A stretch of 64,000 bases of DNA. Source: Trichosphaerium sp. ATCC 40318. Its lineage: Eukaryota > Protista > Tubulinea. The DNA is taken from assembly GCA_038496445.1 (NCBI GenBank), contig JALMLS010000065.1, forward strand, positions 186,001 to 250,000. The letters run 5' to 3'. Below the pieces are notes generated by a model. The model worked only from the letters and a program-made list of their open reading frames with translations, ran no database searches and was not told where the DNA came from. Position numbers and translations under genes: made by a program. Positions 35,589 through 46,673 of the stretch are shown here, one piece after another; within the stretch, counting starts at the first letter, position 1; every line of letters starts with the position of its first letter.

Positions 35589-36001
35589 CAGCCTAAATAC
35601 GCGAGTAAAGCATTACCGGGTAAACTTAACGATTTTTTGGGTATTTAAGTATCCTTGAAGTTCCAGTACTTCTTTGCAATCTCGTACGAATCTCTTTCAT
35701 TGCATAAGCAACACATAAAAGGAATCGCAAAGTATGTTATCTGGACAGGTTTTTGTCAAGCTGTGGCAGCTGGGGTAACCTGCTGAAGTGTCCAACAATA
35801 GAGTAAAAAAAAAGTGGTCTTGGTGAGATACCTTACATAGCAACTACGTTCTTCTTTTTACTACAATAAAAAGATACCCGAAGTTTTAATTTTACACTAA
35901 AATAAATCACGTGACGGCCTTAAAAAGCGAAATAAAAACTTAAACTTTTTTCAAAGCTCATCCGAAAAGAAGCTTCTCTTGGTTTTCGTCGTTAAAATAG
36001 A

Positions 36002-38709
36002 ATGGCGGAGAATACGGCATATCAGATAACTTTTATCATCGCTGATGTAGAAAAGACAGTAAACAGAGCCGAAAAGAAGATAAATAAATATGCTGGTACA
36101 AAGCCAAGACACGTAAGAGATGCCTTGAGTACATTGTATACAGCAAAAGCGAAAGTAAGCGCTTCTCTTGATTCCAGTCCTAAAGAAAAAAATGACCTTC
36201 AAAAACTGTTAGATAGAATAGAGAGTACGTGGTAATACCCATAAAACGTTATTTTGTGTATTTTTTTTTAGGGTAAAGACAAACAAAAAAGTTCTTATTT
36301 TAAATCTCTTTAGTGCTCATTGAAACGAACCTAAACGACCTGGTATGTAGTATATTTAGCGAAAAGTGTACTATCTAACTATAATTATAGACATCCGGAC
36401 CGCCTGAGCTTGATGCCAAACGTACACTTTAGCACCATTTAAAAAAAAAAAACATTAAAAAAGCGCTTTAGAAATCAAATTTTCGAGAAGTAAGCACGGT
36501 AAGGATTTTTTGGGACAGGGTAGTTTTGGATTGGTGTATAAGGGTACTCTTGCTGGGTCTAAAGTAGCGGTGAAGGTACCAATGATGCTGTTTGTCAGAA
36601 AACTCTTTTTTCAATTTTTTCTACCTTCACGCACGTGATTTTTACAAAAAGGTGCTGTACTGTGCGTTTTATTTATTCTTTTGTTATTGAGAAGTAGATA
36701 CCGAACAAGTTTGTTGAGAATATGGACGAGTTTCGTCGTGAAGTCCAAATAATGCGAAAATTGTTTCACCCAAATATTGTCATGGTAAGAAAGCCGTTCG
36801 TCGGGTTTTTTGGATTGTATGCTTATACATTCGTTTATTACTGATTTAGTTGATTGGCGCTTCTACTAATGCTGATACTGGAGAAGTTATTATTGTAAGT
36901 GAGCTTATGGATAAAGATCTAGAACAGTTTATGAGCAGTGGTCAGTACTTAAAGTTTGATCTTGGTCAAAGGATCAAATTAGCAAAGGACGTTGCGTTAG
37001 GTATGCCTTCGTCATATTTAAAAATTGCGTGTGCTCGAGGATAAATACTGAATATTTTGTAAAAGGACTCAATTGGTTGAACACTCAGTGCAAGATTGTT
37101 CATCGTGATATAAAGCTGGGTAATATTTTGATTGATGAGCACAACGTCGCCAAAATAGCAGACTTTGGTATGTGATAGTTCTCAGTTCGCTATTCCGTTA
37201 GAGACACGTGTTAACGTTTTGCGCACGTGTGTTTTAGGTTTCAGCCAAGTGAAGACGTCACTTGATGATATTGACGGTGAGGCGAATCCAAAAGGAAACA
37301 TAATGTACATGGTACAAGTGAAAGGTTTTTTTTGGAGAGTCGACGATACTAATCGAACGAAAAGGCACCAGAAGTTATGATGGGCAAGTCATACAACCAA
37401 TCTGCTGATGTTTATGGGTATTCCTTCCTTACAGTTTCGTATTAAAGACCTCGTTTGAGTAATCTTATAATTAGATACGGCTTAATCCTTTGGGAAATTA
37501 TCACTGGACAGTTCTGGGAACCTCCTCTGGAGTTTTCTCAAAAGGCTACTTACAAAAAGTTTATTTGTAAGCTTGAAGAAAGACCTCCAATACCTGAGAG
37601 AGTCAGTCCTATACTAAAAAACCTCATGATGAAATGCTGGTACGCAAGATTTTTATAAGTGGTTGAAATCTTATGCAAAACTTTTTTGACCTGTGATTTA
37701 TTTTTAGGTCACCTAAGCCCAGTGAGCGACCTCAGTTTAAAGAAGTAATCGCTCTTCTAAACGAGGCATATATTGACTTTAAGCTACCAAGACCCGAAGC
37801 TGCAAAATTCTGGAAAGATCACTTCTTTAACCAAAAAACGGTATTGGGAATGTAAAGAATCAACTAAACGCTAAATTTGCTTAGGCATCATTTGATGAAT
37901 CTGTTTCATGGCGATACTTAAAGAACCTCCTTCGCTCTTCGCTTTCTATAAGCGACTACTCAGGTACTTATTCTATTAACACGTGCGCCAAAAATATTAA
38001 CAAGAGTTGTTAAGGTCTTGAAGCTATAATGTGTTGGAACTGGAGCGAGCCTGAGCCTTCAAGCGAGAAAGCTACAACTGTATCGATTGAAATGTTTGGT
38101 AAAGTCCAAACAATCTTTGGAAGGTTCTTCTTAGGCGAATCTTGCCAAATTTTAACACAAGTACGTTACAACGAACCATACATAGTAAGATAAGCGTGGC
38201 TTGCTTTAACACAAAAAAAAGATGTCAAAGATGGTTAGAAACAAAGCGTTTCATGGCTTCATCAATAGAGAGAAAGCTCAATTCAGGTTATCTGGTAGAG
38301 AAGCTGGATACTACTTGATCCGTATCAGGTATAAAATACACGTGAGAAATCACGTGTAACTTAAAAATTGTACTGATTGATTTGGTTATAGTGACAGCGT
38401 AAAAGGATGTCCTTTGACGATAACATACTCGAACGGCACTAATGGCCAAGGAAACGCACGTGTCAGGCTATATGAGAGCAAGGAGGAGATGAACGTGTAT
38501 TATTACAAGGTCATCTCAGCAGGTAAACTCAGAGTTGTTGTAACGTTATAATAAGTAATTTAGGTGAACAAGAGAGTAGTGTCAAGCCTCATAGAACTCT
38601 TCAAGCCGCTATTGAAAACGCTTCTGTTGACTTAAAGAAAGCGTGTCCTAAATTCCCTGTTGCAGGTGTACATGACTACAACGTGACTCTTGACTCACCA
38701 ACAATATGA
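36002..38709 (+). CDS. TKL-type kinase with C-terminal SH2 domain (Dictyostelium Shk-like)
   Basis: LGQGSFG, VAVK, HRDIKLGN, ADFG, YMAPE, ADVYGYG, ERPPIP; FWKDHFF..VSW linker; SH2 FHGFINREKAQFRLSGREAGYYLIRIS. Confidence 0.88.
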
Positions 38710-40810: not shown

Positions 40811-41169
40811 GTTAGCTATTTACGCACCAACCAATACAAATCTGCGAGCAATCACAAGTTCAATTACACCGACTTCGGATGATAGATAGGGTTGGTTCTT
40901 CAAGTGTTAGATATTAGGGTTTTTTGTCACTCTGGTTCACAGGATTGTAACGGTTCAATCAGTAAATCAAACGTTTATTAAATAAGTCAACGTAATTATT
41001 TACCAAGTGGATAAAAAACGATTCTACCCTTTCCACCACTACGTTCTATACTCCCGGTATGGTACAACAGTAGTTAATAGTTTAAAAAACACAAGTATGC
41101 ATAAAACATACATTTTATGGTTATTCTAGTAACTAACGTGCGTCAATAAGCTTACTAGCTGTCAATAAG

Positions 41170-44100
41170 ATGAATGAAATGAATCCTACTTCAAACAAGA
41201 AAAGTACGCCCAAACGACCATCCAAAACGTTAAAAAGCAACGTGCTTATACTAAAACCAACATATTGGCGATTTTAAAACGTTATTCCAAATCTGCAGGT
41301 GTCACTTTTTTTTTTTTTGACATTCTTTAATTATAGAGCTGTTACAGACATGGACGAGGCCACCTGTACGCGATTCATATTTTAAAAAAAAGTCTAAAGA
41401 GATTTTTTATTTTTGATGTTTAACGATTTTTTTTGAACAGACTCCTTGCTCTACACGCAAAACAGTGAATGATACAGAATTGTATCAAGTGACAGACATC
41501 AAACTGTTCACCAAAATGCTAAACTGTACACATTTTGGTCTCTCAATGCTTGTACGTCGTTTATTGTTGTTAAAACAGGTTTTTTTTTTGGCCTTCTCTT
41601 TGTTAGGTTAGTTGACTTGTTTTCAAGTGTACTGGCACTTCAGGATTTATGTGTATATCTGTACCAGAGGTTACCGTTCTGTATATAATTGATTTGTCTC
41701 ACCCAGACGTTAACGAGCTACAACAACCTTTTGGAAATCCCAAAGTGATGAAAATAATGTTTGAGCACGTGCTTGATTTTTTCGACCTACTTATCATCTG
41801 ATGTTTCTCTATTCAGCTTGGAAGACATAGTATTAAAACTTAGAGCAGAAACAAGCTTAAAACTTGTGAATGTATTTGATCTGAAGTTAGCCACACAGCA
41901 GAAACATGGTATGAACTTTCGTTTTTTGGTTTTTTTTTTTCACTCTTGTGGAAGGTATTGTGGACATGGTTTCTGCTTATGAAAACTTTCTTGATATTTC
42001 TATAAGCACTGAAGCTATTGGGTTGAGTATTGATAGGGAAATCAAACAATTAGAACCGATAACAAAGAGGAATATCCAAAAGATTTGCTATTATATCCTA
42101 CCACTTTATCACGTTGCCTGTAAGGGTTTAGAGGAAGGAACGTAATTTATGACATCACTGTATTATTTATTTCTCTTCTAATACACTTATTAGATATTAA
42201 TAAATTGTGGATGGAGTCACAAGACATTAATGAGGTATGGCGTTCTTTATGTTCATGAACATCTTAACATTTTTGATAGAAAATGGCTATTCCCTCTCTG
42301 TTACCTGTGCAAACTACTCCACAACCTATGCAAATGTGTCTTCCTGTAAGAATAGAAACGCAAGAGGTATAAGTCAAGTAAAAGCTACTCTTGTTAGTAA
42401 CGTTGCAATAGGACGAGAGCATGCCGCAACTTTTAAAAGCTACTACAAATAATAGACCTACCAACAAGTCTGTAAACAATAATTATATAACCAAGTTAAA
42501 CACACTTTGCCAACAAAACAAGTGGGTCCCGAAATACAGGTATATTTCAGTACTTTCTTTGATGTATTTTTCTTATTTTTTTCTGTAGTAATAGCACAGC
42601 TAATGACATGTTCGTTGTAACAGTATGTAGCCACAATTCACGATTCATATTACCTGTTGTTCATTTTTTGGTTAGGTAAACGTGCAAATGGGACAAAACT
42701 CGGAACCTGTAAAGTGTGATGCGGATGGGAAAACTAGGAAAGAAGCAAAAGAAAAAGCGGCAAAAGCAATGTATGAACTACTTTGTCAATCGTCATCACC
42801 AGCACGTGACCATAAACAGAGTCGGAAACGTAAAGGTAATCGTATAGATATAGATGTATATTGTACTTACATTGGAACTATAGCCACTGCAGAAGCGTCA
42901 CCCGACCTTGAATCTGGGTTTGCTATGTGTAGAACTTGTGATGCAAAATTGTTTCCCATTAAATACTTGACGATGAATGGCAACAATCTTAATTGGAATA
43001 CTGCTTTTAGTGATGAATTCAAACACCTAAAGAGTATTACTAAAATTCCACATCCAAAGCGCCAGAGTGAGCCTAACAAAATAACAAAGTTGAGGTGCGC
43101 TAAGTGTAATGGAGATGTTGGTATCATATGGAAGTTGGATGGTACGGTTTTTTTTGGAATGTTTTTTTGACAGGATGTCTTATCTTCTTTAATAGGTACT
43201 GTGATGACTACTTTTAAGCATAATACATTACGTAATAATAGTGCGTATGGATATACTTCTATCAAGCAGTGGTTATCTTGTAGTAAATCAACAAAAAAAC
43301 CTAAAACACAAATTGTTTAACTAAAATTGTCGTCTTTTTATCTTATGTTTTTTTTCTTCAGTGCTCGCTACCGTCCGCAACAAACGCTCTAAGACTACTC
43401 ACCAAACCACATCACCAAAATTAAAGCCACTGAGCACCACAAATGCAAATGAAGAAGAAAAACAAAGCAGGTTTCTTTTAGAGCTTCCTGAAACGCTTCA
43501 ACTGGCGGAAAAAGCATTCTCAAAACTTTCTTACAAAAACACAGTACAATTCATGCCAGCAAAAAAATTTTACTGCTATCTTGTGACTATAGATAGTCCA
43601 ATCCTTCAAAACGTACGCCCATGTTATTATTCCACCTTGAAATTAAAACAAAGAGTTGTAGATGCCAAAGTATGATTTTATTCCTTCCGATTTACAATGG
43701 GACTCATATGTTTTGTTGATGAAAGATAAGATGTACATTGCCCCTCTCAAGTTTGGTAAAGGAGATACAACAGCTTCTGTAATTCTGTTAGGACCAAAGG
43801 CACGTGTTAATTAGGTAGTCTCCTTCTTACAGAAGCTTATATTTTGGGTATAGTCGTTTTCTGCGCCTGAAATACAACAACTTCTGTCATATCACAATGT
43901 ATTATATTCTGGTTTTATGAGATACCCAATAGACAGTGAATACAATCGTACCACGTACAAAAAGAAAGTAAAGACATACATATTGATCATGTGATTAGGA
44001 AAATAAAAAACAGTGGTAGGCCTTCAGAAACAGCTATTGTAGCACTTGGGTTTAAGGTACTCTTTTTTGATTCATCTACTGTCTTACTTGTTACACCCCA

Positions 44101-46186
44101 AGGGTCAAGATTACAAAAATACCTTCGTCGATTTAAGGAAGATGAATAGAATATTTGGAGAAACCGCAGGAGAAAGTTTGCTTGATATAATCAATAACAA
44201 ATCATGTGCGCTATACTGTTTTTTGAGAGTCTTTTTTTTGACGGTTTTAGTGGATAATAAACGACTTTTGAGTAACAGAATTTGCTGTACAACATACAAT
44301 AGTGCATACTATTCAATTAATAGAGTCGATCATAGTATCAACCCTACATCCAAGACACATTTTGCGCCTAGTAAAGAACCTACAAAAAAACTTTGTCTAA
44401 CGTTTTCTTGATTTAGACAAAACATACGCAGGGTATATCAAAGAAATCTATAAACATAATGTCACGGATCTATCCCAACCTATGATTTTAACAGGTGGTA
44501 AAGAAAGTACGAGAAAGGATAAGTTAGTTGGATTTTGGTTAACTTTTTTTTGAAAAAGGCTGCCCCAAAAGTAGACATCCAAAGCTTATCCCAGAATTTT
44601 GCTTAGTATTACCTATAAGTGCTGATATAAAGATATTATCATTTACTATACTGAAGATACTTTTTGAAAACCTTAATACACTGTATTGTTTCTACAAAGA
44701 AGCAGAGGAATGGCAAGAAACAACCTTCCAACATTACAAAAACTTGAAACTTGACAATCAACAACTACTAAAAAAAGTACGTTACCTCCAACCTTTTATG
44801 ACATGTTAGAATGAATCAGACATAGTACAAAGCGTATTGACTCTGTATGTTAAGCTTTTATCAATGCTAGTCTTCTCAAAACTCAGTAATGTCAAAATCT
44901 TTCTTAGCTAATTTTTTTTGTTTGCTTAACTATTTTGTTTTTTAAGGTATTCACACTTCCTTCATATGCAAATGAAAATGAAGTTAACTTAATAAGAAAT
45001 ACATCAAGTAATCAAGCTTTGGAATGGCTTGGAGACGGTATTCTTAAATTTATAAGTTGTTTATACATTTATCAAAAATATCCAAATCAACAACCAGATG
45101 CTCTCACAAGTAGGACTACCAAATACTTGAGTAATAAGAGCCTCAAAAAGAAAGGCAAGAAGATATCTATATTCAATAGCAAACATATTTTAAGTAGTGC
45201 CACAGTGAGTTATTTGAAACAAGATCGTCAACTTTTTTTGTTTGCTTACAACTTTTTTTTTTAAAATAGAATGATGTCCCTTCAGGAGAGAATATGAAGG
45301 CTCCAGCAGATTGTATGGAAGCGTTCATAGGTGATAATATTTCTTAGTATTAAATTTTTATGTTAAAGCTAAATATAGGTGCTTTGTATCTCGAAAAAGG
45401 ACTTGAAGCTGCTGCAAAGTTTATATCTGTATTCATTTTTGAAGATGACAATTTTTCAACGGATGCTCTTTGTAAACCTCAAAGAATACATTCAAGGGAT
45501 ATTGAAGGCATAAAAGAATCCAAAGAAGTTATTGGACTACTTACAAGACTTGGAATAAAGACGCAGTATCCTCAACTATACCAGAAAGCTTTTATTCACA
45601 AAACTCATCCTTCATTTGACATTTGTCAATCTTATGAGAGAATGGAGTTTCTAGGTATGTTTATAACATGTGTCCCACTATTCAATCCAATTACAATAAC
45701 ATAGGTGATGCTGTACTACAGTTTTTAAGTTCAGTGTTTGTCTTCCATGAGCTCAAGGACAACATGTCTGATGCAAAAGGACTTTCTTCTGGGATCGCTC
45801 CTGAAGGAATTCTTACACTTAAACGCAAGGCTATTGTCCAAAATGATACACTCAAGGATGTGTGTATTAATCTTGGCATGGAAAAGTGCATAAAGAAAGC
45901 AGAAAACGTAACAAATGACAAGATTTACGGAGATGTGGTTGAAGGTAAACACTTTTTTTTTGTTGACCTTTTTGTGGGTTTTTTTATAACTGCTTTTTGA
46001 AGCTTTTATCTGTGCATTGTACTTTGATAAAGGACTTAAGTATGATAAACAAAACAATATGCATACTTTATCAACAGGGTTCCTTGTAAAGAATTTATAT
46101 CCACTAAAAGGTAAGCCCAACTTTGATATTTTTTGTGTTGTTCAGTTGGCTAATTATCTAAAGACAAGCGATGCATATTTTCTTAA
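41170..46186 (+). CDS. Dicer-like RNase III protein: pseudo-exonuclease, dsRBD, RIG-I-like CTD, platform/PAZ, RNase IIIa, RNase IIIb (start uncertain, 40880-41350)
   Basis: RNase IIIa NQALEWLGDGILK..ADCMEAFIGALY; IIIb YERMEFLGDAVLQ..YGDVVEAFICALY; PAZ TYAGYIKEIYKHNVTDLSQPMI..LIPEFC; dsRBD NYITKLNTLCQ..GKTRKEAKEKAAKAMY. Confidence 0.9.
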
Positions 46187-46673
46187 AACAATCTCACCAA
46201 TAAACACATGAGTAGCACATTTTTTATTTACGAAGATACTACAAATCCATAGGATGTAAAAGGTTCATACCCTTTTGAATAAACGAATAGATTTTTTATT
46301 TGACCAGATTTTTGGCGAAAATGCAGTTGAGGAAAGAATGTTGAGAGTATGGGGAAGTACATTGTCTAAGTGCAACAAGGGATGATGACAGAGATTGGTA
46401 TGAACAAAAACCAGCTCTTACTTGAAGGGCTACAAGGATCCAGTCTAAGCACCTTTGCTCCACTCAGAGGACTAAGTTGTAAAAAGTGCAGGAAACAAAA
46501 AAGTGCTGGTATCAGTTGCCTACGTGAATAAACACCATATAGAAAGGCTACATTGCCTTGCTTAAATAAGCTTCAAAACACAAACAAATACCCTCTTCCA
46601 TTGGTATGTTTCGAAGCCAATATTTTTATCAAGTAGAAAAGGATGGTTTCTTTTAGATTTTTGTTTTGAAAAA

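Follow-up and report, generated by a model that had tools for sequence, protein, structure and literature searches.

A putative zinc beta-tent domain resembling the RLR C-terminal domain in a likely Dicer-like gene of an amoebozoan

The C-terminal domain (CTD) of the RLR proteins is the part that distinguishes viral RNA ends from self RNA. It has been described as an animal-only domain (PMC4287342; PMC8662601). Can a related domain be found in an amoebozoan, beside the enzymes of RNA silencing? The question is raised by a locus of Trichosphaerium sp. ATCC 40318 in the window analysed here, a 64,000-nt stretch of contig JALMLS010000065.1, where an initial annotation placed a segment resembling the RIG-I CTD inside a Dicer. 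The segment is read here as a zinc beta-tent domain, with the RLR CTD as the nearest known family, that is probably RNA-binding and forms part of a likely Dicer-like protein. As a joint explanation this reading stands at even chances.

The observation behind the annotation is real. Frame 1 of the + strand at 42880-43270 translates into exactly the residues that had been quoted, and the two CxxC pairs, said to lie about 50 residues apart, are separated by 52. The cysteine pattern of domain exon 1 is C-x2-C-x52-C-x2-C, with CRTC and CAKC as the two knuckles of a predicted four-cysteine zinc site like that of the RLR CTD. Within the 64-kb window the + strand has no other match to the pattern C-x2-C-x40-62-C-x1-4-C, and the - strand holds one looser match. 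The exon is transcribed and spliced, being contiguous in spliced transcript contigs of two runs, X1 and X3, whose identity to the window is 99% or more; contigs of X2, which derive from a relative, are 90-95% identical. All the motifs of the annotated interval 42880-43270 are exonic, but its limits need revision. The spliced contigs place an intron at 43142-43195, so that the interval takes in 54 intronic nucleotides, and its first residues (IA...) are derived from the intron upstream. This 48-nt intron is in frame and has no stops, and the raw sequence therefore reads as an open reading frame there. The domain has a pI of 9.3 and, once the two exons are joined, comprises about 114 residues. 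The end of exon 2 at 43282 is predicted from the donor GTAAAT and from a phase that fits the acceptor at 43361. The basic loop holds, in addition to PHPK, a K-x-x-K pair with lysines at -6 and -3 from the third cysteine. The features of the locus are collected in Table 1.

Table 1. Positions in the window of the zinc domain and of the gene around it.
Feature	Position	Strand	Basis or detail
5′ exons, ATG near 41170	41170-42135	+	RNA-supported junctions; translation
dsRBD, over three exons (42412-42539, 42589-42622, 42676-42835)	42484-42783	+	Pfam dsrm; spliced contigs
Intron, 48 nt	42836-42883	+	Joint 42833>42882 (cut +2), X1 and X3
Domain exon 1, both CxxC knuckles	42884-43141	+	85 codons from 42886; X1 and X3 contigs
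Zinc knuckle 1, CRTC	42928-42939	+	Sequence, motif positions
Basic loop before third Cys	43021-43095	+	8 K/R against 1 D/E in 25 residues
PHPK, within basic loop	43048-43059	+	Sequence
Zinc knuckle 2, CAKC, then NGDVGIIWK	43096-43107	+	Sequence
Intron within zinc domain, 54 nt, GT..AG	43142-43195	+	Joint 43140>43195 (cut +1), X1 and X3
Domain exon 2, phase 1	43196-43282	+	Contigs to 43267 (X1) and 43252 (X3)
TFKH, Lys at RIG-I K888 offset	43210-43221	+	Domain exon 2
K-Q-W	43264-43272	+	Domain exon 2
Predicted middle exons, fold unassigned	43362-44946	+	43362-43612, 43662-43805, 43854-43954, 43999-44056, 44103 or 44142-44205, 44251 onward
RNase IIIa and RNase IIIb exons	44947-46186	+	Pfam Ribonuclease_3 E 5e-11, 6e-7; X1 and X3 junctions
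RNase III acidic motifs	LEWLGD 45019-45036, DCMEAF 45309-45326, MEFLGD 45642-45709, DVVEAF 45932-46007	+	Translation
Stop codon	46184-46186	+	Translation

Among Pfam families the best match of the zinc domain is RIG-I_C-RD, with an E value of 2-3e-4 and 21-22 bits against a cut-off of 25.6 bits. The exact exon scores 21.2 bits (E 3.4e-4 in a search of the complete Pfam library) over model positions 4-72 of 117, the part covered by exon 1, and a 74-aa trim scores 21.8 bits; the remote tests were made on the domain up to its last 29 residues. Beta-tent families account for four of the five best matches. The other three are Yippee-Mis18 (PF03226) in second place with 15.1-15.7 bits (cut-off 26.6 bits), the At4g08330 beta-tent (PF24046) with 14.3-14.5 bits and SelR (PF01641) in fifth place with 13 bits (cut-off 24.9 bits). 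The C-terminal 45 aa of the exon, comprising the basic loop and knuckle 2, contribute 18 of the 21-22 RIG-I_C-RD bits, and on this half PF24046 is only 2 bits lower. The N-terminal 45 aa alone match nothing in Pfam, and the 28-aa second exon alone matches nothing in Pfam or in the PDB sequence search. Up to E 10, the PDB sequence search yields only two beta-tent proteins, the DRH-3 CTD (E 0.18) and RIG-I (E 1.1 and 2.3), both in the correct zinc-knuckle register, with no Yippee, Mis18, CRBN or MsrB sequence. Matches between one beta-tent family and another at E 0.005-10 are routine (Lupas et al., PMC4287342), and RLR CTDs are mutually only about 22% identical (PMC8464030). The comparison of profiles that had been proposed as a check thus ranks RIG-I_C-RD ahead of its competitors, with a match that is beyond chance yet short of the curated cut-off. 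As all matches fall under the family thresholds, kinship with the RLR CTDs is a suggestion only.

The residues themselves were said to line up with human RIG-I, including basic residues of the 5′-triphosphate pocket. In an ungapped register, K858, K861 and K888 are indeed each matched by a lysine, and close to the KWK motif there is a K-x-W; the roles of these residues in the RIG-I CTD are described in PMC8464030. HMMER's alignment to RIG-I also puts the K-x-x-K pair on K858 and K861. In exon 2 the lysine stands at +14 from the conserved glycine, as does K888 in RIG-I, and K-Q-W takes the place of KWK two to three residues earlier. The alignment of PHPK with PHPK is less exact. It needs a gap of two residues, and since PHPK is offset by two in HMMER's alignment, RIG-I H847 and F853 have no counterpart. 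Knuckle 2 of RIG-I is C-x4-C, in contrast to the C-x2-C found here and in DRH-3, the CTD of which shares the register C..C..DVG..[WY]K. LGP2 also has C-x2-C at this knuckle. Recognition of 5′-ppp ends, as the annotation proposed, may be a property of the zinc domain, purely by inference.

An AlphaFold single-sequence model of the truncated domain, which cannot count as evidence separate from the sequence signal, has a pLDDT of 56. Its predicted strands follow the beta-tent order, and a beta-tent fold is assigned to the segment with low confidence; the members of this superfamily are Yippee/Mis18, CULT, MsrB and the RLR CTD. In a Foldseek search of 350,542 chains the top 50 are all beta-tent proteins, at E values of at least 0.075 and with MsrB1 in the first row. 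Re-ranking with VIA brings RLR CTDs to ranks 1-31, and an unbiased structure search of 48,161 chains lists LGP2 first, MDA5, RIG-I and DRH-3 among the others, and MsrB at rank 27. The structural Z of the RLR CTDs in the re-ranking and the unbiased search is 3.4-3.8, for a model of pLDDT 56. Mis18 Yippee domains are present in all the structure lists. Structure prediction, a check that the annotation had named, thus places RLR CTDs at the top, but at a low pLDDT and with Z below 4. In ESM-Atlas features the nearest clusters are SelR without exception (60/60, score 0.91), and the search with SelR excluded gives no usable match. The top ESM-Atlas shape match is a plant cluster auto-named 'C-terminal domain of RIG-I domain-containing protein', which shows that RIG-I-type matches of this kind arise outside animals without known RNA sensing. 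Taken together, the Pfam profile, the PDB sequence search and the structure ranking suggest the RLR CTD as the nearest known family. The RIG-I CTD reading survives in this form, as a beta-tent domain nearest to the RLR CTD; on the other side are the sub-threshold score, the Yippee-type spacing and the ESM preference for MsrB.

Sequence libraries yield no closer relative. A HMMER search of 1.84 billion representative proteins finds no true homologue of the zinc domain, its three hits, to a C2H2 zinc-finger array, a He_PIG repeat protein and another repeat protein, being spurious matches to repetitive sequences. No match is returned by a word-indexed protein search, with a length window that excludes full-length proteins, for the 162-aa raw ORF, which includes intron-derived residues. 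Comparison of the domain with metagenome contigs and viral contigs reveals no related locus. A search with an RNase III exon recovers only a giant-virus-like contig (L001) with an ordinary short RNase III, which is irrelevant to the zinc domain.

What else might such a domain be? A generic beta-tent of the Yippee/Mis18 type would owe its likeness to RLRs to the shared fold, and would serve protein contacts or oligomerisation, for instance by making the nuclease a dimer or by binding a partner, with no direct part in reading RNA ends. Yippee cysteines are spaced C-x2-C-x52-C-x2-C, exactly as here. The second place in Pfam, the recurrence of Mis18 domains in the structure lists and the frequent cross-hits between beta-tent families agree with this reading, but it falls 6 bits under RIG-I_C-RD, and the PDB search returns two RLR CTDs but nothing from Yippee, Mis18 or CRBN. 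Nucleic-acid binding agrees better with a loop so rich in basic residues and with a dsRBD as neighbour; Yippee proteins have no lysine-rich loop and are stand-alone or belong to centromere-licensing complexes, not to RNA enzymes. A Yippee-type module of this kind is unlikely, though it keeps some weight. The plant At4g08330 family and the auto-named plant cluster likewise are non-animal beta-tents that cross-hit RIG-I_C-RD. They are, in contrast, small stand-alone proteins of unknown function with no RNA-domain association, and score lower on the whole exon. A degenerate MsrB/SelR-derived domain, or another ligand-pocket beta-tent, that has lost catalysis and acts as a structural or small-molecule-binding module is very unlikely: SelR is only fifth in Pfam, MsrB is far down the unbiased structure search and absent from the PDB sequence matches, and the second domain exon has no catalytic Cys motif of the MsrB type. 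In its favour are the uniform SelR neighbourhood in ESM-Atlas, the first row of Foldseek and the C..C...LF start of the domain, which resembles MsrB. That the cysteines fall into this arrangement by chance, in a linker that does not fold, is extremely improbable. The want of homologues in very large protein libraries and the low model confidence would agree with it, but an expressed and spliced exon matches one beta-tent family at E 2-3e-4 and three more among the top Pfam matches, the Foldseek top 50 are of one fold, and the predicted strands are in beta-tent order.

A further alternative concerns the gene rather than the fold. The zinc domain comes directly after the dsRBD, which Pfam dsrm recognises on separate exons (N-terminal part E 0.006, C-terminal part E 0.19), and upstream of the RNase III domains. 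The N-terminal region looks, from its translation, like a 3′-5′ exonuclease with the first acidic motif replaced; single 5′ exons have no Pfam match. Both tandem RNase III domains carry the E/D and D/E acidic motifs of a Dicer-like RNase III. A C-terminal dsRBD is absent after RNase IIIb, the exon-sized ORFs tested at 41441-46211 have no Pfam match to a helicase, and no PAZ domain is detectable in the Dicer-like gene. The middle exons form an in-frame chain with introns of 44-79 nt and have coding-frame scores similar to those of verified exons; spliced X2 contigs support the donor at 43613 and the junction 44205/44251. Exon 43662-43755 of an early gene model was dropped because an X2 contig runs uninterrupted through 43675-43797. 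The zinc-domain exons are probably continuous with the RNase III exons in one protein, and the placement of the segment inside a Dicer is likely to be correct, although no bridging transcript was found: 43268-44108 has no X1 or X3 contig, and none joins 43267 to the RNase III exons. It is somewhat unlikely that the zinc domain instead ends a separate protein (exonuclease-like region, dsRBD and zinc domain), with the RNase III gene as its downstream neighbour. Such a protein would stop at 43318, if the intron 43283-43361 remained unspliced, or at 43812, both stops being in frame, and the new gene would begin with the ATG that lies exactly at 44142; the ends of the X1 and X3 contigs before the uncovered stretch are compatible with this. 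Yet in the 116-codon frame from 43325, which holds exon 43362-43612, the first ATG comes only at 43553, after 76 open codons, and the exon itself starts at a strong acceptor whose phase matches that of the donor at 43283. The would-be intergenic stretches 43854-43954 and 43999-44056 score as coding, like verified exons, and the introns that join them, of 44-48 nt, are typical of the gene. An X2 contig ends at 43797, just short of the model donor at 43806.

If the zinc domain, with its four cysteines, beta-tent fold and nearness to the RLR CTD (RIG-I, LGP2, MDA5, DRH-3), does belong to a protein that probably runs on into two predicted-active RNase III domains, the product would be a Dicer-like enzyme with neither a helicase nor a detectable PAZ. 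The role of the domain would most likely be RNA binding. The lysine-rich loop before knuckle 2 and the next strand would make the contacts to the phosphate backbone or to the duplex end, and the adjoining dsRBD would hold the stem, so that the two domains might replace the helicase and PAZ of canonical Dicers in substrate and end recognition. A narrower proposal, and quite an unlikely one, is that the domain caps blunt or 5′-triphosphate dsRNA ends (such as RdRP or viral products), replaces helicase and PAZ in an amoebozoan Dicer and is one of a lineage-specific family of end-sensing domains. Were this true, the sensor of RNA ends in animal innate immunity would predate animals and would have served RNA silencing first. 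A related domain beside a dsRBD, in an RNase III enzyme of an amoebozoan, would offer a concrete candidate, open to test, for an ancestry of the sensor before animals; the alternative meaning is that the beta-tent fold has been put to such use by convergence. Such a domain would also give a hint as to how a Dicer that has no helicase or PAZ picks and measures its substrates. Even with a Yippee-like scaffold, the combination of an exonuclease-like region, a dsRBD, a beta-tent and RNase III would be undescribed, as far as the searches went.

Previously described amoebozoan Dicer-like proteins are not known to have a helicase and carry an N-terminal dsRBD followed by two C-terminal RNase III domains. 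Compared by description, they have neither a beta-tent zinc domain nor an exonuclease-like N-terminus described for them. They belong to the RNAi/miRNA machinery (PMC6161686, PMC5056781). The RLR CTD (PF11648: RIG-I, LGP2, MDA5, DRH-1/DRH-3) shares with the Trichosphaerium domain the two-knuckle zinc site, the basic loop before the third cysteine with the lysine offsets and near-KWK motif given above, and an RNA-silencing context, as for DRH-1 and DRH-3 with Dicer. It differs in that it ends a DExD/H helicase, whereas the domain here follows a dsRBD in a gene with no SF2 helicase, has no counterpart of H847/F853 in register and occurs in an amoebozoan host. In C. elegans the antiviral complex DCR-1/DRH-1/RDE-4 unites dicing by RNase III with dsRBDs and a CTD of the RLR type on one substrate. 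That complex consists of three proteins including a helicase; here the same functions would reside in a single chain with no helicase.

The zinc domain of the putative Dicer-like gene is expressed. Public contigs were placed on 41100-46400 with the reported cut shifts applied, and the transcript contigs of two runs, X1 and X3, are spliced and at least 99% identical to the window, which is eukaryotic sequence of about 36% G+C with numerous very short introns. The domain begins on an exon that carries every motif cited in the initial annotation (see the table), and the intron ahead of that exon reads as open frame in the raw sequence because it is in frame and has no stop. The residues quoted earlier are indeed those of frame 1 of 42880-43270, and the two CxxC pairs described as about 50 residues apart are separated by 52 (C-x2-C-x52-C-x2-C); a scan of the 64 kb found no second such pattern on the + strand. 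The spliced domain has about 114 residues and a pI of 9.3, with eight K/R and one D/E among the 25 residues preceding the third cysteine; past ...GIIWKLD it continues with G-TVMTTFKH...SIKQW.

Features of the zinc domain and of the predicted exons downstream
Feature	Position	Strand	Source
Exon, end of dsRBD	42676-42835	+	spliced X1/X3 contigs
Intron, 48 nt	42836-42883	+	spliced X1/X3 contigs
Exon with cited motifs	42884-43141	+	spliced X1/X3 contigs
CRTC (first knuckle)	42928-42939	+	exon 42884-43141
PHPK	43048-43059	+	exon 42884-43141
CAKC (second knuckle)	43096-43107	+	exon 42884-43141
Intron, 54 nt	43142-43195	+	spliced X1/X3 contigs
Exon start, phase 1	43196	+	spliced X1/X3 contigs
Predicted exons, 44-49-nt introns	43662-43805, 43854-43954, 43999-44056, 44103 (or 44142)-44205	+	

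An ATG is present near 41170. The N-terminal region of the gene (41441-41764) resembles a 3'-5' exonuclease of the WRN/RNase D type in which the DxE of the first motif is replaced (…FGLSMLC…), and single exons of this region have no Pfam match. A dsRBD divided over three exons follows. The exons between 44947 and the stop codon (46184-46186) have RNA support and encode a pair of RNase III domains whose acidic motifs are intact; a dsRBD after them is absent, and neither a helicase nor a platform-PAZ was detected in the gene. Micro-exons of 29-43 nt (41337-41365, 42192-42234 and 42589-42622) are RNA-supported, and one of them divides the dsRBD into its three pieces; together with introns of 45-76 nt, they cause an ORF-based reading of this genome to miss or distort many domains. 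The 56 nt at 42138-42193 are absent from both spliced runs and no placement of the cuts yields GT..AG, the best being GA..AG with a donor (GAACGT) one letter off the gene's common GTACGT; either an intron of non-canonical type or a difference of assembly or strain underlies this. Exon 41628-41764 is followed by an intron (about 41765-41815) that appears to start with GCACGT and would then be of the GC..AG type.

The domain had been placed inside a protist Dicer, and an in-frame exon chain does lead from it to the RNase III exons; 43268-44108 is without X1 or X3 contigs, so the join itself is predicted. A single gene is nevertheless the reading we moderately favour. A strong acceptor at 43361 matches the phase of the donor GTAAAT at 43283, and the frame that this acceptor opens has its first ATG at 43553, preceded by 76 open codons counted from 43325. 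Spliced contigs of a relative, run X2, back the donor at 43613 and the junction 44205/44251; one X2 alignment ends at 43797, a few bases short of the model donor at 43806. Were the gene to stop at 43812 and a second to begin at the ATG at 44142, 43854-43954 and 43999-44056 would be intergenic, yet in the model frame the two have coding scores much like those of verified exons left out of training. A stop at 43318, reached through a retained intron 43283-43361, best accounts for where the contigs end but offers no explanation for the long open frame without an ATG. Alongside the one-gene form, a short isoform could end past the zinc domain. The X2 contigs are 90-95% identical to the gene over 43487-44344 and 45385-46285, with none over the zinc-domain exons; the differences listed in 43487-43797 include two third-codon-position changes and one Ile-to-Val. 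A related species or strain thus expresses an orthologue.

Remote comparisons covered the first 85 of the domain's roughly 114 residues, and Pfam was run on exactly the 85-residue exon 42884-43141. Four of the exon's five top Pfam matches are beta-tent families. RIG-I_C-RD leads (model positions 4-72 of 117, E 3.4e-4), followed by Yippee-Mis18 (E 0.026, 15.1 bits, cut-off 26.6), At4g08330 beta-tent (E 0.044, 14.3 bits, cut-off 27) and SelR (E 0.1, 13 bits, cut-off 24.9). The profile scoring proposed in the initial annotation thus puts RIG-I_C-RD ahead of Yippee-Mis18 and SelR, but at 21.2 bits, under the family cut-off of 25.6. The C-terminal 45 residues of the exon, comprising the basic loop and second knuckle, score 18.1 bits with RIG-I_C-RD, 15.9 with At4g08330 and 12.8 with Yippee; the N-terminal 45 have no Pfam match. 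Among 177,635 distinct PDB sequences (phmmer), the sole beta-tent match of the whole exon is the human RIG-I C-terminal domain (CTD; E 1.1). When only the C-terminal 45 residues are queried, the DRH-3 CTD of C. elegans comes top (E 0.18, register C..C..DVG..[WY]K) and RIG-I third (E 2.3), and Yippee, Mis18, cereblon and MsrB are absent up to E 10. Each of these E-values is insignificant alone; two different CTDs of RIG-I-like receptors (RLRs) in the best three or four of 177,635 would be unlikely by chance alone and suggest some real resemblance.

Two lysines, six and three residues ahead of the third cysteine, align with RIG-I K858 and K861 (HMMER, ungapped); the PHPK-to-PHPK match of the earlier alignment requires a two-residue gap, and in register RIG-I H847 and F853, the latter the end-stacking residue, have no counterpart. 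A lysine at +14 from the conserved glycine past the second knuckle aligns with K888, whose role is known from RIG-I CTD structures, and K-Q-W sits 2-3 residues ahead of the K907-W908 position. K858-K861 and the KWK motif are named as 5'-ppp/backbone contacts in RIG-I and DRH-3 (PMC8464030). RLR CTDs are only about 22% identical among themselves (PMC8464030), so low identity alone is no argument against kinship.

The AlphaFold2 model of the exon, built without an alignment, is poor (pLDDT 56), and its six strands follow the beta-tent order. Against 350,542 PDB chains its lowest Foldseek E is 0.075, and the best 50 are all beta-tent proteins (MsrB1, many RIG-I, Mis18, LGP2, DRH-3, MDA5). After VIA-align re-alignment ranks 1-31 are RLR CTDs (Z 3.8 for LGP2, 3.6 for RIG-I, 3.1 for MDA5), followed by Mis18 (2.7), and in a search of 48,161 representatives that does not depend on Foldseek, LGP2 comes top (3.4) and the 49 matches reaching Z 2 include MDA5, Mis18, RIG-I, MsrB1 and DRH-3, all these values lying far under the tool's meaningful level and coming from a single-sequence model not independent of the sequence signal. 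We read the structure searches as arguing well for the fold class and weakly for the RLR sub-type.

Other signals point elsewhere, and in some respects beta-tent families without an RNA role are just as near to the domain. Its knuckle spacing of x52 is that of Yippee, in contrast to RIG-I (C-x2-C-x50-C-x4-C), and a Yippee/Mis18-like protein-protein module, which trails in the Pfam ranking, is an unlikely reading. ESM-Atlas features of the exon retrieve SelR/MsrB clusters only (score 0.91), with nothing usable left once SelR is set aside; a degenerate MsrB-like pocket domain, to be set against the low SelR profile score, is improbable. Absence of any folded domain would fit the pLDDT and not the strand order, and is very improbable indeed. 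By shape, the closest ESM-Atlas entry comes from plants, a cluster with the automatic name 'C-terminal domain of RIG-I domain-containing protein' and partly with Yippee-Mis18, and databases thus already hold sub-threshold RIG-I_C-RD matches beyond animals; the RIG-I domain has been stated to be detectable in animals only (Lupas et al., PMC4287342). The same study shows that matches between different beta-tent families are routine at E 0.005-10. Homologues were found neither by word-indexed protein search nor in scans of metagenome and viral contigs, and HMMER against 1.84 billion representatives gave three matches, all repeat-protein artefacts, so there is no family profile for the domain. The initial interpretation is partly supported: we regard the segment as a beta-tent zinc domain that has the RLR CTDs as its nearest known family, and class it as RLR-CTD-like, set in an RNA-silencing architecture that is new and lies outside animals.

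In this RNA-processing protein a zinc-knuckle beta-tent with a lysine-rich face directly follows a dsRBD. If the analogy to RLR CTDs holds, its basic loop and next strand would grip the phosphate backbone or a duplex end, and the dsRBD would bind the adjoining stem and hand the RNA on to the two RNase III domains. Canonical Dicers leave this task to helicase and platform-PAZ. In RLRs the CTD occurs in a helicase context, whereas here it stands without one. A preference for 5'-ppp or blunt ends is no more than possible; the domain lacks one stacking and one phosphate-contact residue of RIG-I. The RLR-type proteins DRH-1 and DRH-3 of C. elegans act with Dicer (PMC8464030).

A metagenome contig retrieved with an RNase III exon (L001:3236-12336, Ga0233412_10001107) is AT-rich and intron-less and resembles a giant virus. 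It encodes a DnaJ protein, a SNF2/VETF-like helicase of 1261 aa and an RNase III of 264 aa with a dsRBD; its retrieval is due to a short motif common to both RNase III sequences and nothing else. The upstream neighbour of the gene (36000-38551, + strand) appears to encode a kinase that joins a protein kinase domain to an SH2 domain (FHGFINREKAQ…YLIRIR), a combination that amoebozoans are known to have.
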